NCBI GenBank assembly: GCA_010909165.1
Contig: MU008157.1
Coordinates: forward strand, 868,001 to 932,000
Source: Anthoceros angustus
Taxonomy: Eukaryota; Plantae; Anthocerotophyta
DNA length: 64,000 nt
Direction: 5' to 3'
Below are positions 8,416 to 62,868 of the stretch, one piece after another; position 1 is the first letter of the stretch; every line of letters starts with the position of its first letter. Below the pieces are notes generated by a model, which searched no databases, was not told where the DNA came from, and saw only the letters and a program-made list of their open reading frames with translations. The translations under genes were made by a program, and so were the position numbers.

Positions 8416-8457
8416 CATGGAATAGCCCATGAGATTAATCTCATGGGCTATTCCATG
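8416..8457. repeat. Perfect 42-bp palindrome centred on TTAA
   Basis: CATGGAATAGCCCATGAGATTAATCTCATGGGCTATTCCATG equals its own reverse complement. Confidence 0.95.
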
Positions 8458-8698: not shown

Positions 8699-8900
8699 GA
8701 GATGGACCATGATGGAGGCAGCTTCTGGTGTGAGAGAATGTAGATAGACCATGATGGACAGGATGCAGCTGTGGATGTGAGGGGCTGGAGATGGACCATG
8801 ATGGATGCAGCTTCTAATGTGAGGGATTGTAGATAGACCATGATAGACAGGATGCAGCTGCGGATGTGAGGGATTGGAGATTGACCATGATGAAGAGGAT
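8699..8900. repeat. Tandem repeat with alternating ~42 and ~47 bp subunits (~89-bp dimer, ~2.3 copies)
   Basis: Recurring AGATGGACCATGATGGA / AGATAGACCATGATGGACAGGATGCAGCTG...GATGTGAGGG units. Confidence 0.8.
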
Positions 8901-9350
8901 GTAGATACGGATGTGAGCTAACGAATAGGGGATCACAACGGTGCAAATAACATGAGGTTTTGTATAAACTTCATAGAGATAGAGGGAAAACAAAAAGGAG
9001 GAATGGAAATGATAAAATAACATATTATTAAATAAATAGAAATAACTAAAACGGTATAGATATATAGACTAGCTACATAGATGATTAATTACTAAAAGAT
9101 ACATAGATAGATATTATATATTATTATTTTATGTTCTCTTGGCCTCTTCGCCTCTGCGCCTAATTCAATAAATAGTATGTACACAGAAAATGTGGATTCC
9201 TAACCGCTTCGAGTCTCCGACCTCAAGGAGAACGTACGTGTGATGTCAAAGTTGGTAACGGCCCAAGACAATTGGATTGAGTTGGGCTGAAGAAGCAGCA
9301 AGCTCCGAGGAATCCTAAGGAAGCACAAGGAGCTCTGAGCAGTCGGAATA

Positions 9351-47329: not shown

Positions 47330-47385
47330 ATTGCCAAATTGCCAAATTGCAAATTGCAAATGGCAAATGGCAAATGGCAAATGCG
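47330..47385. repeat. CAAATTG/CAAATGG heptamer microsatellite-like run upstream of RKP
   Basis: AAATTGCCAAATTGCCAAATTGCAAATTGCAAATGGCAAATGGCAAATGGCAAATG. Confidence 0.8.
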
Positions 47386-48492
47386 AGGTCCCATTGGTGC
47401 GACCTGTCCAACGGATTGGATTGGACGGAGTCGGGCCAACGCCGTTTCACCGCTCGCACCTTGCCACGCGCATGTGGACAGGGACAAACCCATGCCGCGT
47501 GGCAACGGCCTCACCAAGATTCCCGATTCCGGCTCCAGTTCCCTTGCCAAACAACGGTAGCAATAATTCACCACCCCACGTTCCAGAAACCCTAACCCGG
47601 GGTCGGGTTTGCCCAACCCGCGGTCACCCCCCAGTGGGGAGTGGGGCGCCCGCAAGGTGTCAGGCGAGCCTCGGCCAGCGCTTGCAGGGACAGGGAAGGG
47701 AAGGGAAGGGAAGGGAAAGGGAAGGTGGCTGGCTATGTCGGGACTCGAGACACGGAACCCCGCTCACCACCAACACCGCAACTGCCTCGGCATCGGCATC
47801 GCCGCGTCACGATCCGACTCCGACCGCGCCTTCTCGCCTGCTGCCGCGCCTGCTCCTGCCCCTGCTGCCGTCGGCCTCGCCTGCGAAGTGCAGGCTCCCG
47901 CCTGCGACGCCGGCATCGGAATTGCCGCCCCCGGCTGGCCTGCGACTCCGCCACTCCCACGGTCTCCAGCTCTCTCGATTCCCGGCCTGGTGCCGGCCTC
48001 TCCGACTCCGCGCGCTGTGTGGCGGTGATGCGGTGCGGCGGGAGGCTTGTCCGGCTCGCAGATCCACGCGGGTGCCGCTGCTCTTGCTCCTCGGGAGCGG
48101 GCCGCGGGGGCCCTTCCCTGCCGCTGCTGCTGCGGCCGCAGCGGGGAGTCCGTCGGCGGGCGGCCAGCGGCCAGCGGAGGTGAGGGTGCGGCCGGGGGAG
48201 ATCGCGCCGGACTCGTGGTGGCGGGAGGGTTCCTGGAAGGTGCGTGTGCGTGGTAGGGGGCCGGGGGAGGGGAATTGGAGCGTGTGGGGAGGCAGGAGGC
48301 CGCTGCGCCCGCACGGGATGACGAGAGCCTCGTGGGCTTCGCCGAAGGCAGGGGTTTGTCACCGGATGCCCTAATTCATCGCGCTGCTGCGGGGTAGGTC
48401 TTGGATCTGGAGCGGAGGTGGAATTGGAGCGCAATTCGGCGTCTGGGATTCCGCTGCCCTGGCGTCGCCGCGGCGGACGCGGCTCCGGAAGG

Positions 48493-51400
48493 ATGTTCCC
48501 CGATGGGAGGTCGTGTAAGGCTAGCAGGCTGGGGCTTATGGGGTCCACGGGGCTGGCGGGGCTGTTAGACAGTAAGGAGACGGGGAGCAGCGTGATCACG
48601 GCCGTGGGGAGCGGGTTGGATGAGAGCAGTAAGTGGGGGCTGGAGAGGACCGTGGCGCATGTGCTCGACATCCCTCCTCTGTCGGCAGATGCGGCGCTGT
48701 GCTGCCCGGGCAATACAATTCACGCTGCGGCTGTGAGGAATTACTTGGAAATACGGCTGCAGAGTGTGGACGATACGCAGTTCCGGGACCCGGATGGACT
48801 CCTGCTCTCTGCCGGGGATCGGGTGGTTGTTATGGATAGGGATTCAGCGTCAGGTGATATCGGCTTTGATGACGCCTGCTTGCTGCTGGAGAGCAAGTCT
48901 AACTTCAGCAGTGCCAGGGCGAATGCATGTGTTTGGAGGGGGAGGTGGATGTACGAGGCCACGCTGGGTACTGCGGGCATCCAGCAGCTGGGTTGGGCTA
49001 CGCTTTCCTGCCCCTTCACTGACGGAGAAGGTGTTGGGGATGCAGCAGACTCCTACGCGTACGATGGCAAGAGGGTGAAGAAGTGGAATGTGAAACAGGA
49101 TCCTTACGGCCAGGCTTGGGTCGCTGGTGATGTCATCGGCTGTTGTATAGACGTGGATGCCGGAAACATTCACTTTTACAGGAACGGCTTTCCTCTAGGC
49201 TTAGCCTTTGAGGGGGTCAAGACTCCTCCAACTGTAGCAGAGGGTTACTATCCTGCCATCTCCTTGTCGCATGGGGAACGCTGCCAACTCAACTTCGGAG
49301 GCAGGCCCTTCAAACATCCCATCCAGGACTATTTACCTGTACAAGCTCCGCCCGCTGTAAGGGAGGGTCTGACTATAGCGTCTGTAAGTGCTGGCGCTGC
49401 CTTTCTGTTTGGATCTCTGCAAAGGCTGGTGCAGCTTGGTAGCCGAGAGGTAGCTGCTGCAATGCCTCTCGCAGACAGGTTGAGGAGATACACGCCCATT
49501 TCCGAAGAGGACACTGCGATGTTGGGATCAGAGATTTGTTCACAGTTGGCCTTGTTGCTCACTACAGATGCTGCAGCTGTTGCTAAGGGAAATTTAGAGT
49601 CTTGCAAGGTGGTAGAGTATTGCATCTGGGGATCATTGGTCCCCTTTCTGATTGATATATACCGTCCTTGTGCCCCTCATGATGGACCCAGCTTGGACCG
49701 TGCATTGGATCTACTACTTCCACGTTTAGATAGCATGGATCTGAACCGTACAGTCACTGGTGTGATGGATGCTTTGGCTTATGGGTGCAAAACTTCTCCT
49801 TTTACTCTGGAAGATCGGCCTTACACGGGATCTTATCGCTACCTTGCACTCGCCTGTCATCTGTTGCGGAGCTATGAGTTCATGGCAGTGTGGTGGAAGT
49901 CATCAAAATTTCAAGATGGTGTGGAAGGCCTTCTTACACGAAAAGGCCCTAATAAGCATGATCTTGAAGTGTTGATGCCAACTGTCTGGTGGCCTGGATC
50001 GAGGGAGGATTTGTGTTCAGAGCAGAACATGAGGCATGCTGCCAATGCTCTATTCAAAGCTATCACAAAGGTAATTTCCTGAGTTGAAACTGGTGAGCTG
50101 TTTGAGATGACCTGTACTCTCTGTTTTCAATCTGCTGCTGTTCGATGCTGTTTCACTCAAGGCACTGGTAACCCTGTTGAAATGTGTTGCAGGTTGAGGA
50201 GTTGCAGTGGGAGCTTTGCCGCCGCCTGCTTCATTTTGTGCCACCTTGTAGCACCGAGCCTAATGCTGTGCAGGTTCCAGGGCTTGTCTTTAGGCAGTTT
50301 TTGCGGAATCTTGTTGATAAGAACCGGGGTGCAAACAGGAATGTACCTCCACCCGGACTCTCCGACAACTCTGTCCTTGTTTCTGCATACTGTGTAGTGC
50401 TTCGTTTTCTCTCGGAGGGGTTGGGAAGTGAGGATCTCGTAGATAGTGAGAAGGATCAGGATGGATCTAGTGGTTTCCTTCATCGAGGGGGGAAGCTTCG
50501 TTTCCCTGTGAGCGTATTTCTGAAGCAGGATTCGTACATCAATGATTTTGCACGACTTGGTGGAACATTCAGCCATGTTTCTAAAATATACCCAGCCAGT
50601 GCAGAGGATCTATCTATCGTAGAATGGGATGAAGGCTGTGTAGATGAGGACAGTAAAGTCTATCACGATAGCAAGCACAAACCTTGCTGTTGCTGGGAGG
50701 TGGAGTATGCTTCTGGTAGTGATGGTAAGACTGCTGTTAGGAGTGGGGAGAAAGCTGTGAACCAAACTCAAAGTACTCCAGCTCCAAGTGGTTTGAGCGA
50801 ACGGAGTAATCACCTGAGCAGCGACTTCAATAGGAGAACGTGCAACAGTTTGATTCAGGAAGATAAGCCTGATTCAAGTGGGCGAGTGGATGACTCCAGC
50901 TTGGACAGCCTGCTACTAAGTAAATGTAAGAGGACAGGGTTCAGGTCAATAAAGGAACTTTCTGAAGCCATAAGGGAGGAAGAGCTGCTGGATTCTATGG
51001 TTCTGCTTTATCACCTTGGACTTGCCTCCAATTTCAAACAGGTTCTTTTCATAAGCTGCCACCATTTGTCTGTTGGCTTGTCCCGGAGTCTGTTTTGTGT
51101 GTCTCTGATCAGCATGCGAAATCATCGTTGTAGTGTTTGCTGTCTATGGAGCAAGAGTTTGGGAATATTCGTTGGGCAGATGCTGCTGTTTTCACTGTTG
51201 CAAACACTCAAAGAGCGTCTGAAACATTGTCAAGTCCAGTCTTTTGCCCAACTATCATTTGACCAAAATTTGTCCTGTGCCTCGTCCAACTCGTGGGCGT
51301 TTAGGGGTTGATTGCAGAGGCAGGAGTTTGTTATTCACCATCTATGTATTCTGAGTTGCGTTTTGTGCTTTTTTGGTGTGCTGGAACAGGCTTCGTACTG

Positions 51401-53879
51401 TATGCAGCATCAAATACAATTAATCAGTCACCTGGATGACACTGACCGTCAGATTCGTGCAGAGAAGAGTTCAAGTGACCAGCTGAAAAGATTAAAAGAG
51501 GCTCGTACAGTTTATAGAGAGGACCTTATAGAGTGTGTACGACAATGCACCTGGTATGTCCCACACGTCCTATCCCTGTTGGGTGTTTAGTTTTGAATGT
51601 TTGAAGCTGACTGAAGTAAAGTAACTGTTGTGTAGTCAAGTATTTGCCTAAGCGGTTTGATGTAAGGCGACTGAGGTGAATAAAAGAAGTATGGTACCGC
51701 TTGTGTCGTCCTAACTCGTCCATTTTACAGGTTTCGGGTTTCATTGTTCTCGAGGTGGAAGCAACGGGGAATGTATGCTACGTGCATGTGGATTGTCCAA
51801 CTCCTGCTAGTGCTTAGCAAAAAGGACCGCATCTTTCGATACATTCCTGAGTTCTACGTGGAAACACTGGTAACTTGTCGGGCAGGTTCACTAGGACTAT
51901 AAATGACCTTTCCTGTTACATTTGCATTTGATGTCATCAGTTGCCCCCTTTTCGCTGCAGGTGGATACTTTCCACGCATTACGCAGGAGTGATCCACCTT
52001 TTGTGTCACCCTCTGTTCTCCTTCAACATGGGCTTGCTCCTCTTGTACGAAACAATTTGTATTATATTTTCATGTTTTGAACATCTTGTGTTATGTGCAG
52101 GTAACATCCTGACAGCGGTGTGGTCTTTCACAGGTCACCTTCCTTGTTACACATTTTAATGATCAAAGGATAGTGAACTCGGATATCAGAGATGTCCTCC
52201 TTCAGTCCATTTCGGTCTTGGTGCAGTATAAGGAGCATGTAGTTGCCTTTGAAAACAACCAAGCGGCTCGGGAGGGGATGATTGGGGCCCTTCTCTCAGC
52301 CTTTGACAACCGATTCTGGATTCCTGTGTCAAACATTCTGCTGCGGCTCTGTAAAGGCAAAGGATTTGGAGCATCAAAAGGCTCGCCCCATGGGGAACCG
52401 TTCTCGTTTGTTTTTCAGGTAGTAAAAGTTCTCCTTTTTGCTTTAGCCTTAAGCCTGGGGTGGTTCTGCGTCTTGTGCATGAAAGAACGCTGTAGGTGGT
52501 GGGACTGAATAGAACAAAACAAGTCTCCTGCAATGTGGGTTAGCTTAACTGAATTGTAGTTTCTTGTCTTGGGAGCAGCAATTGCTACGGAAGAAGTGCA
52601 TACTCGATGACAAGTTGTTCAGCTCTTTTCTTAATCGGCTGTTCAACACCTTGAACTGGACAATAACTGAGTTTTCAGTATCAATCAAGGAGATGCAGGA
52701 GCTTCCTGACAAGCGACAGGTGCAATGATTGTTTTCTGCTACTGCTGTTTAGTCTACAGAACGCATGCAAGACAGTGAGTTGGTGGTGGTTGTAGAATGA
52801 AGTCGGGGTCTGGTGGTGTCCCTTGCATTGTCACCCATGAAATGACATACTTTCACAGGTACCTGAAGTGCAGCAGAGAAAGTGTACGATAATGTTTGAG
52901 TTATCGTGCAATCTTGCAAGGATACTGGAGTTCTTCACGCAAGAGTTGCCGCAGGCATTTCTAGTGGGTGCGGAGATGAACCTCATCAGGCTATGTGAAC
53001 TGATAATCTTTGTGTTAAATCACACCACATCCAGTGCCGATGCTCAGCTCTTTGACAGGCAAGAAGACATGCTTGTGAAGTTTGGTTGTGAACTCCTGTA
53101 GTCAGCAATTGTGAGGCACTGACTAGAATATTCCATGCATGCAACAGCACCCTCAGATTGCAGGGTCAGTCATTGGAGAAGGTGAACAGATCAATGATCC
53201 TTGCTCCTCTAGTGGGCATTGTGCTAAACTTAGCAGCTGCGACGGATGCCGAAAACCATGGCATGGCACATGATATTGCACATGCGATTGCCAATGTAGA
53301 TGCCTCATCAGGAGCTCTGACAAACTTCCAATACTTACTCGAGTATAACTGGGTATGGCTGAAGTTGATGCCGAAGAGCACAGCTGTGTCTAGAGTTGAA
53401 GTGCAAGGTATTGCACCTTTAGGGGTTGCTTATGTTGGATTGGGTGCTGCAGGGGACCTCATTCAAGGGTGATCCATCTCTTAGAAGGGTGCCGGAGCTG
53501 CAAGTGTTTGTGAACAAGCTGCAGATAGAGACCGAGGAGGCAAACCAAAGGGCAACTGAAGAAGAGCTCCTAGCTGCAATTGCAGCCTCTGTGGATGAGG
53601 GTAAGGAGCCAGCACTGGTGCTAGATCCTACCCTATGCAGTGCACGGATTTCTGCTTTTTTCTGACTTTCAACGTCATGCAGGGATGACTGGCGGAAGTG
53701 AGGACAGGGTGGAGAAGGTGGAGGTTTGTAGCATATGCTATGCTTGTGAGATCGACACGATGTTCACGCCCTGCAAGCACCAATCATGTTTGCGCTGCAT
53801 CTCACGGCATCTGTTAAATAATCAGCGCTGTTTTTTCTGCAATGCAACCATAGCCGAGTTGTCTTCTCTCTCGGATTAA
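48493..53879 (+). CDS. RKP: RING E3 ubiquitin ligase RKP/KPC1 (RNF123): SPRY domain, central helical region, C-terminal RING
   Basis: SNFSSARANACVWRGRWMYEATLGTAGIQQLGWAT..GVGDAADSYAYDGKR (SPRY); FRWKQRGMYATCMW; YIPEFYVE; DNRFWIPVSNILLRL; FLNRLFNTLNW; CSICYACEIDTMFTPCKHQSCLRCISRHLLNNQRCFFC (RING). Confidence 0.93.
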
Positions 53880-54767
53880 GAGGTGAGGTAGGCAAGCTGC
53901 TGAAGGGCAGGTTCTCAACACACAAGGGGTAGGAATGGTAACACGAGACTGCAAATGGATATGAAAAGCTGTGTCTTCTGATGTGGTTTGTGGTCTCCAT
54001 GTCATGTCTGATCCACAATTCTGGATAGGTGGGTGCACCGTCTCCTTAAGGTGGGTGTACCGAATCCTCTGCCTTTGTAATTTGAAGCATGCATAATTGA
54101 GCACCATATTGGAGGACGTATCCTCCAAGCATACCCTTCAGCCAAGGGAAGTGTTATTGTGACTCTTGGACGTCAACGGGAGCCTTAGATAGTCGGGAGA
54201 CTCAGAAGTGTCTGTATATATCTTGGAAGCGATAAAAATAAAGTTAAAACTTGACAATATGAGGTGTGGAAAGATATATTCTTACCTAACCCAACCCCTT
54301 GGTACACCGATTCCGCGAAACCAGTAACCGGATTTACATGGAAATGCGGCCTTCCTGTGTCCTCTTCTTCCCTCCTGTTACCGAGTCCTTACCGCGTAGC
54401 TTACAGAAACCCGGCCCGGGCTCATGGAAACTCGCCCATAGGTGACAGGGTCCCTACAGGGAGAGGGTACCCTTGGTCCAAGCAGCTTTGTGGTGCAAGT
54501 ATCAGGTCCCATGACGGAAGTGCAGTGGCTCTGGTATCAGGTCCAATGACGGAAGTGCATCCTTAGTGGACTGACTACAACAGGAATTCTTCTATTACTA
54601 AGTTAGAAATTCATCCCATAGTGCAGGAGAGCAACCCCATCCAGCACACGAGCTTCCGGAACCGGGGGGAGCTATCCAAATCTGCTGGTGCTGACCTCCA
54701 TCGCCCAATTCGGAGTTGGCAGGACTCTCACCACATAACGACCACAAGTTACCATGAGTCCAGTCGT

Positions 54768-56476
54768 TCAACAATACGTCGCAACGAACCTCTCCACCAA
54801 CGGGTTCACCAGGTTGGGTGCCTCATCCTGGACAAGCAAGTGTCCCGTTAAGAGGCCGGCAAGCTCATGAAAGCTTCAGGTGGTGGCAGGTATGTGGCAC
54901 GAACCTGTGGGCAATGGCCTACGTTGGGCAGGACGACAAACTCCTGCACTGTGTCAAACTCCTGATACGCTTTCCCTAAAGCAAGAGGTTCCCAAGGATC
55001 CTTCTCCCCCCATCCGAACCAGACGGGACACTGCAGTACAGGCCGTACCAGATTAGAAAGCTTCAAGCACGCATCTGCTTTGCTGCCGATGAATGACGAC
55101 TTGCCAGCAACAACCGACCTTGACTAAAGGAAGCAGCTCCTCAGGCAAGGGGCCCCCAGAGTAGCATATGAAGTCCAAGAACACGTCCACTGCTCCTGGC
55201 TGCAGACCTGGTCCCAGAATGAGCTCCACAAGCTCGTCCGTCACAGCACTGTCATCATGATAACACTGCAAAAGCACGCTCACGGAAGCGTCAATCAACT
55301 GCCGGCAAAAGAACCGGGTGCCGAAGCCGGTGTCATAAAAAGCTTCACCTCACACAGGATCCTCTTCACTGCATTTGGCTTTGCCACCGCCTTGAAAAAC
55401 CTCTGTCCGATATCTGTGTTTCTGCACCTCCCAGAAACCAGGTACAGTGAAGTGAGAACCCCCGAGCGCGATGGTGTAAACTTGGCCCAGGAGTTTGCTT
55501 GCCCGCACAGGTGCAGGCCACAACTGACCTTAAAACATCCTGCAGAGCTTTCACAAACGGGCGAGCATACCAGGCCTGCTTCTTGATGTGCAGCATACGC
55601 AGCGATATATTGAGTAACAGCAATCCCCTCACGGCACCCGGATCCAGCACAGCTGCCTGCAGGCCAACGACGCCTGCAAAGCACCTCACACCTTGGTCTC
55701 CCAACATCCAGCCTGAAAGTACACTGAAGCAGCAGTGTGGCACAACCACAACCAACCTCCAACCGAGTTGCAGATCACGAAAGGACGGTCGTTGATCACC
55801 TCCGCAGAGAAACTCAAAATCTGCTTAGCCCACGTCTCAAACGTGTAGGGCGACTCGGTCTGTGACCTAGGCTTATCCGAATAGCCATACCCCAGCAGAT
55901 CGATGGCGAAAACTCTGTGTGATGTGGCCAGCACAGGTATGTTCTTCCGCCAATGGTCACTGCACACTCCTCCAATTCAGCTACCTCTGCACATCATCCC
56001 TTCATCTTGCCAGTAAGCAACACAACATAACACTATACCAGTTGGCTCCGAACCCATGAACCAGCAACAGCGCAGGGCCTGCCCCTCCCGCAAATTGGTA
56101 CCGTATATTATACTCCCCCCATTTCCAAATGCTGCAACGCATGCACGCAATCCAACGCAAGCCGTTTGAGCATCAAACTGCTTCAGCTTTTGTGCTGTAA
56201 ATCAAGCACCCTAAACATCCACCTTGTCTGCACAGCAGGCAGTGTTGAGGGCAAGGTTAGAGCGGCCTCCTGCTCCGCACCAGGACTGTCTTCTCGGATC
56301 TGCAGAGCTCGCACGCCTGCCCTGCTCCTGTGTCTGGAGATGGCAGCCGTAGAAGAGGCTGCTCGGTTGCACCCACATTCATGCCTGATGGCGACAGGGC
56401 TTGCGCGGATCGTGACGGCCCGCTGCTCCCGAGACGCAATGGGATAAAACGCTCCCAAGGCGGAGGACGCCGCCAT
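54768..56476 (-). CDS. Alpha/beta-hydrolase (pheophytinase-like family), probably plastid-targeted
   Basis: LLLVHGFGAN|.DHWRKNIPVLA..HRVFAIDLLGYGYSDKP; nucleophile elbow ICNSVGG; FLDFICYSGGPLPEELLP; WGEKDPWEP; LPNVGHCPQ|DEAPNLVNPL; TGA at 54768-54770. Confidence 0.88.
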
Positions 56477-56569: not shown

Positions 56570-56653
56570 GTCAGGATGGCCGAGTGGTCTAAGGCGGCAG
56601 ACTCAAGTTCTGGTCTCCGAAAGGGGGCGTGGGTTCAAATCCCACTTCTGACA
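56570..56653 (+). tRNA. tRNA-Leu (CAA)
   Basis: GTCAGGATGGCCGAGTGGTCTAAGGCGGCAGACTCAAGTTCTGGTCTCCGAAAGGGGGCGTGGGTTCAAATCCCACTTCTGACA. Long variable arm, A and B boxes, T-run downstream; one G-G mismatch at the top of the anticodon stem. Confidence 0.93.
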
Positions 56654-56693
56654 CATGGCTTTGGCAAGCTTGGCCGCTAAATGTGTTTGATGT

Positions 56694-56751
56694 CAGCTTC
56701 TTTTTCACTCTTTCTCTTAGTCCAGCTTCTTTTTCACTCTTTCTCTTAGTC
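56694..56751. repeat. Perfect 29-bp tandem duplication containing the putative Pol III terminator
   Basis: CAGCTTCTTTTTCACTCTTTCTCTTAGTC occurs twice. Confidence 0.9.
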
Positions 56752-56800
56752 TTGTGATAGGTTTTGTTCCTATTCAGATGTTTCTATAAGTGTATATCGA

Positions 56801-57134
56801 TTATGTTTAAGTTAGAGTGGTTGTATGGTCTCAAGGTGCTAGTCTCAAATTCTAGCCCCTTGAGAGGGCATGGGTTTTAATTATGTTTAAGTTAGAGTGG
56901 TTGTATGGTCTCAAGGTGCTAGTCTCAAATTCTAGCCCCTTGAGAGGGCATGGGTTTTAATTATGTTTAAGTTAGAGTGGTTGTATGGTCTCAAGGTGCT
57001 AGTCTCAAATTCTAGCCCCTTGAGAGGGCATGGGTTTTAATTATGTTTAAGTTAGAGTGGTTGTATGGTCTCAAGGTGCTAGTCTCAAATTCTAGCCCCT
57101 TGAGAGGGCATGAGTTTTAATTCTACTTCTGGCA
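56801..57134 (+). repeat. Four 80-bp tandem units derived from a decayed tRNA-Leu-CAA; the last unit runs on into the tRNA 3' end
   Basis: Units start at 56801, 56881, 56961 and 57041 and are identical except for one G>A. The segment 57051-57134 aligns end to end with the tRNA-Leu at 56570 (about two-thirds identity by hand alignment, CAA retained). Confidence 0.9.
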
Positions 57135-57165: not shown

Positions 57166-57582
57166 TCATGGGACTTGGTACTTGATAACTTGTACTATGG
57201 TGTGCTTACGCTTCTAGCACCAAGAGCATCCACTCCCTCTAGGCAGCTCATGCAAGTAGCAATCGAAGTACGGGATGCTTGCTTAACAGCGACGTTCTTA
57301 TAAATGTGTGTCCATTTGGCCTAAGCCATTTGGACACACATTTAAATATATGTACGTATTTTAACTCAACGTGATACTACTATATGTGCTTGCGGCTGAT
57401 AGTTTAAACGTATTTTCTTATAAATTTATGTCCAAATGACTTAGGCCAAATGGACACACATTTATAAAAATGTGGTTGTCAAGCATCGGTACTTAGATGG
57501 GGTGCCTAAAGGGAGTGGATGCCCTTGGTGCTGGTAGCTTAGGCACACCATGGTACAAGTTGTTGAGTCCCAAGCGCCATGA
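57166..57582. mobile_element. Foldback/MITE-like element with ~170-bp imperfect inverted arms and a ~75-bp spacer
   Basis: 57166-57345 matches the reverse complement of 57421-57582 (e.g. AGCACCAAGAGCATCCACTCCC / GGGAGTGGATGCCCTTGGTGCT and TATAAATGTGTGTCCATTTGGCCTAAG / CTTAGGCCAAATGGACACACATTTATA). Confidence 0.75.
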
Positions 57583-57677: not shown

Positions 57678-57979
57678 AAAAAATTCCATCGAAGTGGATT
57701 GTAATATACTTCTTCTTCATGCTGCATATTTTATCCAATTGGAAGGTATGATATGTAGAAGAAGAAGCTATTGCTTTTGGCGGCACAGGTCTATTGGCCA
57801 CAAAGGCCTCAGCGCCAGTGGCGTTCTAGGGAGTTGACTCTCTCTGCCCCTATCTTGGCTTCTAGCTTCTAAACCAAAAATTCCTACATCTTGAAGGGTT
57901 GAGGAAGGGCCCTTCCCCCTCTAGGAGTCCTTCAGGCTGGCTAGGGGCTTCTTACCCACACAAGCTAGGGAGATCATGC

Positions 57980-58290
57980 CTCATATACATTGCTCAATGT
58001 GAGCAATGTATATGGGCATATACATTGCTCACATTACGTTGCCCATATGCCCATATGCCCATATGCTTAATGCCCATATACAATGTACATTGCTCAATGC
58101 CCATATGTTCATATACAATGTACATGGGCATAGCCAATGTATATGCCCATATACATTGCTCAATGCCTCACTTGGGGATGTATCATGCCCATATACATTG
58201 CTCAATGCATGACTTGGGGATGTATCATGCCCATATACATTGCTCAATGCGTCACTTGGGGATGTGTCATGCCCATATGCATTGCTCAAT
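57980..58290. repeat. 42-bp tandem repeat (3.5 clean copies at 58143-58290) preceded by decayed subunits
   Basis: ATGCCCATATACATTGCTCAATGC...CTTGGGGATGTATC; upstream CCCATAT and ACATTGCTCA fragments. Confidence 0.85.
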
Positions 58291-58418
58291 TATGTTTCTC
58301 TCTGGGCTGATTTATTTTGACCAGAGGGGACCAGGTCTCTATTGCAGATGTGGTTGTAACAAACCCTACTCGGGACATCGTCAAAGAGCATGTCATCATC
58401 TGGGAACCATTGGAGCTT

Positions 58419-58540
58419 AGCACTAGAGGGATGCGCACAACTAAGGCTTAGAAGAAGTACAGCCCAATATAGGAAGGCTGAGCACTAGAGGGATGCGCAC
58501 AACTAAGGCTTAGAAGAAGTACAGCTCAATATACGAAGGT
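58419..58540. repeat. 62-bp tandem duplication
   Basis: AGCACTAGAGGGATGCGCACAACTAAGGCTTAGAAGAAGTACAGC.CAATAT..GAAGG occurs twice. Confidence 0.9.
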
Positions 58541-59408
58541 CATGCATTCATTCCTCTTGAGACCGAGACTCATGTGGCCATGGGCAAGGATTTTGTGAGG
58601 TTTATCAAGGGTTGTGCTAAGACCTGCCACACCTTTAAGAATGAGGTAAGCCTCCTCCTATCTTGTGTGGTGGCTTTCTTCCGACAACGTCCTCCCATAG
58701 CCTTGTAGAGGGCAATGGCAAAACGCAATTTTTAACACAACTTCAAATGCGGGAGATACGGCATCTTCATCTCCCGTCGTAAGTAGGCCCTTTGTTTATG
58801 CCGATATCTTGAGGGCAGTAGATAATTTAAAGGTAAAGAATAGCAGAACTCTAGTCCCATGGCACATAGCCCTTTAGTGGGTTCCCACTCCCTCTGTGCA
58901 CATGGCACTTCCAATCTCAGCAAGCTAAAAAGTCTTCGAAGAAGAAGTATATTAAAATATTTATATACATATTATATACTTATGTACCTACAACATAAAT
59001 GTACATAAAGGGTTCCCGGACGGGCAACTTATGGAAAAGAGAAAGGCCGCCACACGCTTGAGAGGACCGAAGTTGGACAGCTCTGCGAGAATAGCGCAAT
59101 TTAGCCCGCTGTGTCGGCGCCGCTGCAGGGCGTGTGGCTCGGAGCCAGCTAGGAGCCCGTCCCTGCCGCTTTCACGACGGGTCGGCATGTGTGTTGCTGT
59201 TGCGGGGCCCGCCTGCGGTTGGGCGCTCTGGCAGACGGCGTCAGTGGCGCGCTCGGCTCGCCTTGTTGATCTCGATTCGCGCATCCCCGCATCCGCGGTT
59301 CGGAGTCGGGGTGTGGAGGAGGTGGAAGAGGAGCGGTGTCGCTGCCGGAATCCGAATCTGTTGCTGTTTGATTGAGCGCCGGATATAGTATTGGAGCAGG
59401 CGGGAAGC

Positions 59409-60269
59409 ATGGCCCGGTTGTGTTGCTGCTTCGGGGCCAGATCTGGGGGAGACAAGGGGAGCAAGGTGGAGGATGCTAAGGCGGCTGCAGCGACGGCGGC
59501 AGGTGAGGGACAGAAGCAGCAGCAGCAAAAGAAGGGAGGAGGCAAGGGAGCGAGCCAGAGCGCGGTGCTGGTGGAATTCTTTACCTCGCAAGGATGCAGC
59601 TCCTGCCCGCCCGCAGATCTGGTGATGTCGAGGCTGGCGCAGGAGGGAGCGGGGGAGGTGCCCGTGGTGGTGTTGGCGTACCATGTGGATATTTGGGACC
59701 ACCTCGGGTGGCGGGATCCGTTCGGCAGCAGCGCCTGGAGCTTGCGGCAGCGGACGTACGCGGAGGTGTTGCAGCAGGACTCCATCTGCACGCCGCAGGC
59801 TGTGGTGCAGGGAGCGGCGCATTGCATCCCCAGCACGGACGCAGGGCTCGGCGGCCTTATTGCCTCGGCGACGCGCTTTTCTGCTGCCGATTTGCACCTG
59901 GCCTTCTCCAGGCCCGCGCCTGACCAGCTCAAGGTTACGGGATTTGTTGTTCCCAAGTTTAAGATCGAGTCTGACTCCAAGGTGGACGTCATGGTGGCGC
60001 TGTTTGAGGATAATCTGGTCACCATGTGCAGCAAGGGGGAGAACATGGGACGGACGCTCACCAACGACTCCGTGGTGCGGGCCTTGGAGAGGTTGTGCAC
60101 TCTGGAGCATCCGCTGCCTGCCAAGAAAGGCAAGGGGGATTTGGAGGTGGTGCTCCCGCTGTGGCAGGGATTTGGCAGGGCCCGGGCCGGGGTTGCTGTC
60201 TTCCTGCAAAATCAGAGAACCAAGCAGGTTTATGGAGTGCAGCGAATTGAGCTGCCTGACAATTTGTGA
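59409..60269 (+). CDS. DUF1223 thioredoxin-fold protein, single exon
   Basis: VLVEFFTSQGCSSCPPAD; LAYHVDIWDHLGWRDPF.SSAWSLRQR.Y; TPQAVVQG; GENMGRTL.ND.VVR. First ATG at 59409 gives MARLCCCFG. Confidence 0.88.
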   Translation: MARLCCCFGARSGGDKGSKVEDAKAAAATAAGEGQKQQQQKKGGGKGASQSAVLVEFFTSQGCSSCPPADLVMSRLAQEGAGEVPVVVLAYHVDIWDHLGWRDPFGSSAWSLRQRTYAEVLQQDSICTPQAVVQGAAHCIPSTDAGLGGLIASATRFSAADLHLAFSRPAPDQLKVTGFVVPKFKIESDSKVDVMVALFEDNLVTMCSKGENMGRTLTNDSVVRALERLCTLEHPLPAKKGKGDLEVVLPLWQGFGRARAGVAVFLQNQRTKQVYGVQRIELPDNL

Positions 60270-61581: not shown

Positions 61582-62868
61582 TCACGAGACGCAACCCACC
61601 TCGGAGTCCCAGATAACTGTGCCATCGCATTTGCACAACGTCTGCCTCAGCTGCCCCACTGTCTTCCCTGCACTTCTGGCAATCACAGCCGCTGCGATCC
61701 CTTCACTGTGGCTCACAGCCTGGTACAAGACGATGGATCGCCCGATCACATCCGACACACTTAGCCGGTTGCTTGTGGACGAGTATTTCGCATGGCCTCG
61801 CGAGTCCGCATCCAGGGTTCCCAGCTCTCCAGCCGCTTTTTCCTTTTGCTGTCCCACGCTTGCGCTTGAAGCGGCTGGATTGAAAGGCCCGCCTGTGCTG
61901 GTTGGACCCCGAGTTAGGTCCCCGAATTCGTTCAAGCTCCAGTGGTGTAATCCTGGTTGTAAACCATCGAATGTGGCCTCTATGCTTGTCACTTCCTTTG
62001 TCAGCTGAACAAGCTGAACAAGCCCGTGGACAACCGGGCCTTTGAACTCTGCAACTGCTACAATCAAGGACTCGGCGTCTGCGACAAACAGGAAGAATTA
62101 TACTTGCAGACAACCGTGCTCTGCATGACTTGTAAGCCTGCCACGCATATAATGTCAGCACGCTTGTCGCAGGAGTTTGAAGTTCCGGAACTCACAACTT
62201 GCGGCCAAGTTTTTGTCGTAATCCGGAGCAGCGCAAACAGAGAGCTGGCTTGCCGGGATGGTCTTGCAAGCCATGAGCTGCGCAATACCTTGCTTGTCTG
62301 TGTTCTTGTTCTGAGCTCTCACTGGCACAACCTGGAATTTAATGTCAAGCACGGCACAGTTCAGGCTTCGCAGTGATAAAAGCTAGTACTAGGCAGTAGG
62401 CCCCGCATCACCTTCAAGCCCTCTTCAAACGGTTTTCTATCCACAGTCCACACACATCACAATCCTCCAACATAGTTAATCTAAGTCCTACAGCCACAAT
62501 TGTACTCGGGACTTTGCGAATGGTCTACAAAGGCAAATCCTTTTCTGTCATTGCCATCTGCGTTTTACCATATCAGGAAGCAGTTTGGTGCTTCTCTTCG
62601 GCTCCACAACGAAGTTGCTGGTCGAGCCTACAGCATGGCTTGATGACAGGTGCATGATAACCGACCTACTATGCAGACCTGCAGGACGGCAGAAATTTAA
62701 ACATTTATGCATGAACCAAGCCGAAAGCCTCACTAATTTGCGTCTGCCAGCATAAGAGTCCCTCGCACGACCCGCAATTCCTGCAGGATGTTCTTGCAGC
62801 TGAAGCTTGTTACTAAGCAACTCGAGTTTCGTACCGTGGAAAGGGATCTCGTGAGCTGATGCCTGCAA
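61582..62868 (-). CDS. CCS: Copper chaperone for superoxide dismutase-like protein; 5' exons unresolved, possible frameshift
   Basis: AVAEFKGP..HGLVQL..IEATFDGLQPGLHHWSLNEFGDLTRG..STG..FNP; G.LGTL.AD..G.A; DVIGRSIVLY; AAAVIARSAG; domain III LCKCDGTVIWD. The upstream exon has MLEDCDVC. Confidence 0.75.

Follow-up and report, generated by a model that had tools for sequence, protein, structure and literature searches.

In Anthoceros angustus contig MU008157.1, the window examined here (the whole stretch of DNA that was analysed, 64,000 nucleotides, with positions counted from its first letter) is gene-rich and includes PPR, BTB, aminotransferase, GMPPB, RKP/RNF123-like, alpha/beta-hydrolase, DUF1223, and Cu/Zn-SOD genes. 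A 2.9-kb spacer between the minus-strand alpha/beta-hydrolase gene and the plus-strand DUF1223 gene holds a tRNA-Leu(CAA) gene together with a short tandem array built on a decayed tRNA copy (referred to below as the relic), and no transposon proteins were found near the array. The features of this region are as follows.

47331-54500, plus strand: RKP/RNF123-like E3 ligase gene (SPRY, RKP_N, and TPR_RNF123 domains)
55686-56476, minus strand: alpha/beta-hydrolase gene, its probable ATG exon ~95 bp from the tRNA-Leu gene
56570-56653, plus strand: intact tRNA-Leu(CAA), the reference paralogue outside the array (ARAGORN; Rfam RF00005, 52.5 bits)
56694-56751, no strand: perfect tandem duplication, 29 bp × 2, lying 40 nt downstream of the tRNA-Leu gene (TRF, 100% matches; junction microhomology 0 bp)
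56800-56802, no strand: ATT junction microhomology, present also at each unit boundary and at 57120-57122
56801-57120, plus strand: four 80-bp units, each 10 nt of flank plus relic positions 1-70 (sequence, TRF, alignment)
56829-56865, no strand: 13-pair Watson-Crick palindrome with a 9-nt loop containing CAA, arms TCTCAAGGTGCTAG (5′) and CTAGCCCCTTGAGA (3′) (fold and simulation)
57051-57134, plus strand: the sole complete 84-nt tRNA-Leu(CAA) relic (58/83 identity, z 9.7)
57113, plus strand: the one difference between units, a G>A in unit 4 that breaks a T-stem pair of the relic (unit alignment, pairing check)
57121-57134, plus strand: unduplicated 3′ end of the relic, with what remains of the T arm followed by the 3′ strand of the acceptor (aligned with the intact tRNA)
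57166-57582, no strand: long inverted repeat with ~190-nt arms, starting 31 nt after the relic (repeat search)
59391-60269, plus strand: DUF1223 protein gene
61582-62067, minus strand: Cu/Zn superoxide dismutase gene

The array consists of four 80-bp units arranged head to tail, as read from the sequence and as called by TRF (56800-57122, period 80, 4.0 copies, 99% matches, score 639), and it begins 147 nt downstream of the end of the intact tRNA-Leu(CAA). Each unit opens with a 10-nt 5′ flank, TTATGTTTAA, after which 70 nt run collinear with tRNA positions 1-70. Units 1-3 are identical to one another and end at relic position 70, without the 3′ side of the T arm and without the acceptor 3′ strand, and only unit 4 is followed by TTCTACTTCTGGCA (57121-57134, 14 nt), which completes an 84-nt tRNA-like sequence. 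The variation accumulated since amplification thus amounts to 1 difference in 320 bp, the G>A at 57113. The preliminary description had reported four 80-bp units differing by one base, about 150 bp downstream of an intact tRNA-Leu-CAA, with the last unit alone running on into a complete tRNA-like sequence, and had proposed a recent amplification; each of these points agrees with the coordinates, the spacing, and the near-identity given here. No other copies of the unit or of the relic were found within the 64-kb window, and when metagenomes were scanned for a 29-mer taken from the unit, 0 matches were returned.

The tRNA-Leu(CAA) at 56570-56653 is probably a functional gene. Its Rfam RF00005 score of 52.5 bits compares with a gathering score of 29 bits for that model, a CAA motif lies just upstream, and the first T5 run occurs 47 nt downstream. 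At the top of its anticodon stem, cmscan reports one G.G mismatch, where the relic has a C-G pair, a difference that hints at descent of the relic from a different isodecoder. The variable arm of other plant Leu(CAA) isodecoders may be closer to that of the relic, and a different parental Leu(CAA) isodecoder could explain some of the variable-arm differences. On the minus strand at 56570-56654, antisense to this nuclear tRNA-Leu(CAA), the Plastid-ycf2 5′UTR model of Rfam gave a weak sub-threshold match (20 bits), which is probably due to overlap of that model with plastid trnL-CAA.

Alignment of the complete relic with the intact gene gives 58 identical positions among the 83 aligned, together with an insertion and a deletion of 1 nt each. 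The global alignment score of 31 far exceeds that of shuffled sequences (-64 ± 10; z 9.7) and of the best random 84-mer from the window (-20), and blastn returns an E-value of 1e-6. The CAA anticodon stands in register in the two sequences, so that the relic shows what is expected of a tRNA pseudogene, namely significant, collinear, full-length homology with the anticodon in place. In the relic, all seven acceptor pairs can still form, three of them as G-U, as can 4 of the 5 anticodon-stem pairs. Because the homology is significant and collinear over the full length, with CAA in register, descent of the unit from a copy of a tRNA-Leu(CAA) gene can be regarded as established by sequence comparison. 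The homology ends exactly at the ends of the tRNA body, which would fit an old DNA duplication and other origins alike and does not distinguish between them. The flanks of the relic and of the intact gene were also compared for sequence in common, as a segmental duplication would leave, and none was found; this result is uninformative, since neutrally evolving flanks would be unrecognisable by now.

The relic is about 30% diverged and biased from GC towards AT. Its 25 substitutions relative to the intact gene comprise 8 C>T, 7 G>A, 4 A>T, 3 A>G, and 3 others, and GC->AT transitions have occurred at 14/48 G/C sites compared with AT->GC at 4/35 A/T sites (ratio 2.6, Fisher P 0.06). When transitions are sorted by cytosine context, CG (3/9), CHG (4/11), and CHH (7/28) sites are affected alike, and CpG-specific erosion, which was considered as a cause, is not seen. 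The CpG observed/expected ratio is 0.35 in the spacer and 0.65 in the window, and the GC content is 57% in the source tRNA sequence and 38-42% in its surroundings. Judged from these base compositions, the GC->AT excess would be what ordinary mutation bias does to a 57%-GC sequence drifting towards its surroundings, and methylation is a plausible eroding cause that is not specifically indicated. The earlier reading of this sequence as an old methylation-eroded paralogue thus stands as regards age and decay, whereas its appeal to methylation finds no CpG specificity and an excess that lies within ordinary bias. The same reading had noted that the differences are mostly C>T and G>A, that the CAA anticodon is kept, and that the acceptor and anticodon stems can still pair; the 15 such changes among the 25 substitutions, the position of CAA in the alignment, and the 7/7 and 4/5 formable pairs accord with this.

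The relic is no longer a tRNA by any standard test, since it fails the covariance threshold, escapes the default tRNA finder, and has lost intact Pol III boxes. The Rfam tRNA model found no match over the array at E<=10, either in 2 kb or in 115 nt, and ARAGORN at default settings called the intact gene only. With its thresholds lowered to 80%, ARAGORN called the complete relic as tRNA-Leu(caa); the truncated units were called at 60% only, and with a spurious anticodon. The preliminary description had set the lack of a covariance-model hit as grounds for abandoning a tRNA origin. Although no Rfam tRNA match appeared, the origin is retained on pairwise homology and on the ARAGORN call at 80%, and we think that an absent covariance match is probably too strict a criterion for rejecting it. 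The consensus of the Pol III A box is TRGCNNAGTGG and that of the B box is GGTTCGANTCC. The A box of the relic, TGGTTGTATGG, keeps 6 of the 9 specified positions and has 3 wrong, and its B box (GGTTTTAATTA in units 1-3, AGTTTTAATTC in unit 4) has 4-5 positions wrong, including loss of the conserved C; the damage to both boxes claimed previously is therefore real. Every unit also contains a T4 run, and between the intact gene and the array lie further terminator-like runs, namely T5 at 56701, T5 at 56730, and T4 at 56762. Read-through from the upstream tRNA, which had been suggested as a source of multimeric transcripts, appears unlikely because Pol III would have to pass two T5 runs and the T4 at 56762, and then a further T4 in every unit.

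A further property of the relic is a palindrome in its centre. The minimum-energy fold consists of an acceptor-like stem around a long central hairpin, with no cloverleaf, and the view of the relic as a cloverleaf-like tRNA is weakened on this point, the fold preferring a derived 13-bp palindrome that the preliminary description had missed. The palindrome spans 37 nt, from the 3′ side of the D arm through the anticodon arm into the variable arm, of which it takes in the 5′ half, and it recurs in the other units at 56909-56945, 56989-57025, and 57069-57105. When the 3′ arm is compared with the reverse complement of the 5′ arm, 13 of 14 positions agree. To gauge how often decay would generate such a structure, the neighbouring tRNA was mutated in simulation according to the substitution spectrum of the relic, an insertion and a deletion being added, a procedure that assumes a neighbour-like ancestor. 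Over 20,000 such decays, the number of Watson-Crick pairs averaged 5.3 and rose to 12 at most, 13 never being attained, and the fold energy of the relic, -28.9 kcal/mol, compares with -18.8 ± 3.1 kcal/mol for simulated decay, 0.3% of 3,000 runs being as stable (P 0.003). The origin of the palindrome is non-random.

The changes that build the palindrome include an inserted C, a deleted T, and a variable-arm cluster of G>T, A>T, A>G, and G>A, and they make up most of the changes in the relic that are not C>T. Counted from the alignment, a template switch would require 6 events to produce the two arms and point mutation 11, so that a template switch offers the most economical history; the reverse-complementarity of the 3′ arm to the 5′ arm, together with this advantage over point mutation, constitutes the footprint expected of the process. 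Since none of the 20,000 random decays attained 13 pairs, a template switch (quasipalindrome correction) is the most likely cause, with the mechanism deduced from the sequence and the paralogue serving as a proxy for the ancestor. Template switching is documented for mutation clusters and for RNA-gene hairpins (PMC5453318; PMC8794818). The pairing composition of the two structures differs as well, with G-U pairs forming 8 of the 18 surviving cloverleaf pairs and none of the 13 hairpin pairs. Passive transitions would be expected to leave such a share of G-U in the cloverleaf, and a hairpin made up of Watson-Crick pairs only is what DNA-level copying would produce, which fits copying rather than selection on RNA.

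The duplication itself has a simple structure. The periodic span, 56800-57122, measures 323 bp, that is, 4 × 80 + 3, the additional 3 bp being the ATT triplet. Head-to-tail units of 10-100 bp with short junction microhomology characterize minisatellites, and the array, with its period of 80 and its ATT junction, shows exactly this arrangement. The 64-kb window contains about 19 minisatellites (periods 20-133 bp), several of which are 97-100% identical, and the junctions of the other young arrays are 0-6 bp; these comparable minisatellites show that such arrays are a background process here. Hairpin-promoted slippage was considered as a general cause of the minisatellites in the window and was set aside, most of the other units being unstructured. 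Because the minisatellite units of the window mostly have no hairpins, the palindrome is not needed to explain the duplication. As regards timing, 24 substitutions have accumulated since release from constraint and at most 1 since amplification, and on the assumption of a clock the duplication would fall within roughly the last 2% of the decay history of the relic.

The spacer around the array is itself unusual. It contains five tandem arrays, and short palindromes are about 11 times denser in it than in the rest of the window. The 29-bp duplication following the tRNA-Leu gene doubles its T5 terminator run (56701 and 56730). The inverted repeat at 57166-57582 would form a near-perfect ~200-bp hairpin over ~420 nt (-242 kcal/mol, z -22.5) with a separate 20-bp palindrome in each arm, and three repeats of the outermost 46 bp carry the right arm on to 57677. 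Rfam gave only sub-threshold matches to this element, to MITE-type miRNA families, and it could be a MITE, a foldback element, or a source of hairpin siRNAs. Further along, a cluster of palindromes on the motif CAATGTATATGGGCATATACATTG occupies 57968-58290 (e.g., 57996-58035, with 19-bp arms) and merges into a 42-bp × 3.7 array, and after this cluster follows a 62-bp × 2 array at 58415-58539.

Similar features occur elsewhere in the window. A perfect 42-bp palindrome (21-bp arms, no spacer) lies at 8416-8457, beside an 89/47-bp tandem array at 8699-8917. The top-scoring tandem array of the window is found at 18423-19023 (133 bp × 4.6, 83% matches), and near it the 24-bp palindrome CATTGTATGGCTGGCCATACAATG occurs twice, at 17632 and 18093. 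A 31-bp × 3 minisatellite (20739-20832) is located 52 bp from the 3′ end of the minus-strand tRNA-Asp(GTC) gene (20884-20956). Thus, each of the two tRNA genes in the window is accompanied by a minisatellite no more than 52 bp from its 3′ end (P ~0.004, with n=2 and judged after the fact), and no shared sequence was found between the 3′ flanks of tRNA-Leu and tRNA-Asp.

We consider, with a probability of about 0.78, that the locus is a non-functional tRNA-Leu(CAA) relic beside a working paralogue, remodelled by a palindrome, recently quadrupled via microhomology, and most likely inert. According to this reading, a copy of tRNA-Leu(CAA) first lost its function and decayed, as the ~24 mostly GC->AT substitutions show. 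Its central 37 nt would then have been remodelled into the near-perfect palindrome observed around the anticodon loop, most likely by a template switch during replication in which the 5′ arm was copied in reverse complement into the place of the 3′ arm. Subsequently, an 80-bp segment (10 nt of flank plus relic 1-70) would have been duplicated between two ATT triplets, the observed junction, slippage or unequal exchange then probably raising the copy number to four, and a G>A in the last unit would have come later. The array looks like a by-product of error-prone DNA copying rather than a new gene; most probably, a tRNA relic served as the seed of an inert minisatellite, one that does nothing and records error-prone replication or repair at the locus.

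Several other explanations account for part of the evidence. The units might constitute a functional array of tRNA-derived hairpin RNAs, processed to small RNAs or tRNA-like decoys, in which an outside promoter (Pol II, Pol IV, or the neighbouring 200-bp hairpin locus) would yield four 37-nt hairpins. The relic is indeed far more structured than random decay allows, its acceptor-like stem is fully kept, and a large hairpin-forming inverted repeat lies 31 nt downstream. Nevertheless, selection on RNA tolerates G-U, and the exclusively Watson-Crick pairing (13/13) is the better fit to DNA-level copying. Plant Dicer typically acts on substrates longer than a 13-bp stem, and the hairpin is too short in this respect; moreover, the Pol III boxes are destroyed, Pol III would terminate at the T4 that each unit contains, and units 1-3 have no acceptor 3′ strand. 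As only four copies at one locus are present in the window, and identical units leave no covariation to compare, we regard such a function as quite unlikely. The structure of the relic has also been considered from another angle, namely that it is a diverged, once-functional Leu isodecoder or tRNA-like gene whose differences were partly selected before its death. In favour of this, 18 of 20 cloverleaf pairs are kept, against 15.1 ± 1.5 expected (P 0.05, or 0.015 when conditioned on the number of stem hits), pair 29-43 shows a double change from C-G to U-A, and at pair 28-44 a G.G has been "repaired" to C-G; part of the divergence may have arisen in a still-working isodecoder or under structural constraint. 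The significance is marginal, however, C>T changes in C-G pairs automatically yield G-U pairs, conserved residues of the D-loop, T-loop, and B box have been lost, and the palindrome is incompatible with a cloverleaf, all of which makes this account of the relic very unlikely.

The repeat, rather than the relic, is at issue in two further explanations. The preliminary description had raised the birth of a tRNA-derived satellite or SINE. On this view, the unit would be the seed of a repeat family that is spreading or will spread, and tandem repeats of tRNA-related sequence have precedents, namely newt PolIII/TAN, Xenopus OAX, and the SINE-derived satellites of squamates (PMC10702118). The work on squamates counted a locus as a satellite nucleus from four units upwards (PMC10702118), which is exactly the number in the array. 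Against this, no second copy of the unit or relic occurs in 64 kb, no target-site duplication was found (the flanks share one 9-mer, as expected by chance), neither the A box nor the B box is intact, and there is no A-rich or LINE-like tail, the sequence past 57134 running into the inverted repeat; the ~19 comparable minisatellites of the window also indicate a background process. Thus, of the marks of a SINE sought in the relic, dispersed copies (within the 64-kb window), a target-site duplication, a promoter head, and a tail were all not found, and the hundreds of units or many loci that define satellite DNA contrast with four units at one locus in the window. The proposal is left unsupported and has a very low probability; on this comparison, the locus would be at most at the "library of short tandem repeats" stage of PMC10702118. 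Finally, the fourfold repeat could reflect stutter of the assembler or of polishing, the true locus having one unit or some other number, as the identity of units 1-3 might suggest. At 320 bp, however, the array is far below long-read length and could be spanned even by short-read pairs, unit 4 has a substitution of its own, and the junction is a clean 3 bp, as in arrays of varied age in the window, so that an artefact of this kind is highly improbable.

The preferred reading of an inert, remodelled, and quadrupled relic combines kinds of sequence that are already known, namely a tRNA relic, a minisatellite, and a template-switch footprint. Like the tRNA relics described beside functional genes (PMC2888827), the present one is a decayed collinear copy less than 1 kb from a gene with the same anticodon, and like them it fails a covariance-model test while remaining alignable. 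Unlike them, it has been remodelled by a palindrome and then partly tandem-duplicated, and it went unreported by Rfam and by default ARAGORN. With microhomology-bounded minisatellites, the array shares its head-to-tail order, 3-bp junction, near-identical copies, and an edge copy with a private variant; nothing essential differs, and its special feature is the tRNA-relic content of the unit. The published template-switch mutations (PMC5453318, PMC8794818) are likewise comparable, in that clustered substitutions and indels make two arms reverse-complementary and create a stem of Watson-Crick pairs only, and de novo miRNA hairpins arising from template switching have been described (bioRxiv 10.1101/2023.04.19.537475). 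Those published cases rest on outgroup-based ancestral reconstruction, whereas here a paralogue stands in for the ancestor, and the direction and number of events are inferred.

Resemblance to larger tRNA-containing repeats is more limited. The Arabidopsis tDNA clusters (Pro, Ser-Tyr-Tyr, and Cys; PMC7544208, PMC10701932, PMC12308677) are also head-to-tail repeats containing tRNA sequences, and they are silenced or inactive, with copy number varying among accessions. Their units, however, are 0.4-1.5 kb long, hold complete, potentially functional tRNA genes, and number in the tens, in contrast to the four copies of an 80-bp, truncated, dead relic; a complete tRNA gene per unit, the hallmark of an Arabidopsis-type tDNA array, is absent here, as units 1-3 stop at position 70. 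The newt, Xenopus, and squamate repeats (PolIII/TAN, OAX, and squamate satellites; PMC10702118) have in common with the array a tRNA-related unit, and four units correspond to the "nucleus" stage. Those repeats derive from dispersed SINE parents or form large arrays, some of them active with Pol III, whereas the present array occupies one locus, has no SINE parent, and has broken promoter boxes.

Taken alone, the locus represents ordinary genome decay, and decoding is unaffected. Its value lies in a clean, datable record of GC->AT decay, a template-switch palindrome, and a microhomology duplication stacked at one spot; each of these three mutational processes is already known, and together they adjoin an active Pol III gene. 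A more far-reaching idea, which we consider unlikely, is that the relic is one case of a lineage-specific process in which the anticodon arm of tRNA-gene copies grows into a long perfect hairpin and is then tandem-amplified, the process being either mutational or the source of an undescribed RNA class. In its mutational form, template switching would be seeded by the anticodon stem where Pol III meets replication forks; in its RNA form, tRNA-derived hairpin RNAs would make up the undescribed class. If the pattern recurs at other tRNA-derived loci, the role of tRNA genes as hotspots of replication error would become testable in a land plant, and if such recurrence holds true, tRNA-like genes with oversized anticodon arms would be products of mutation rather than new RNAs.
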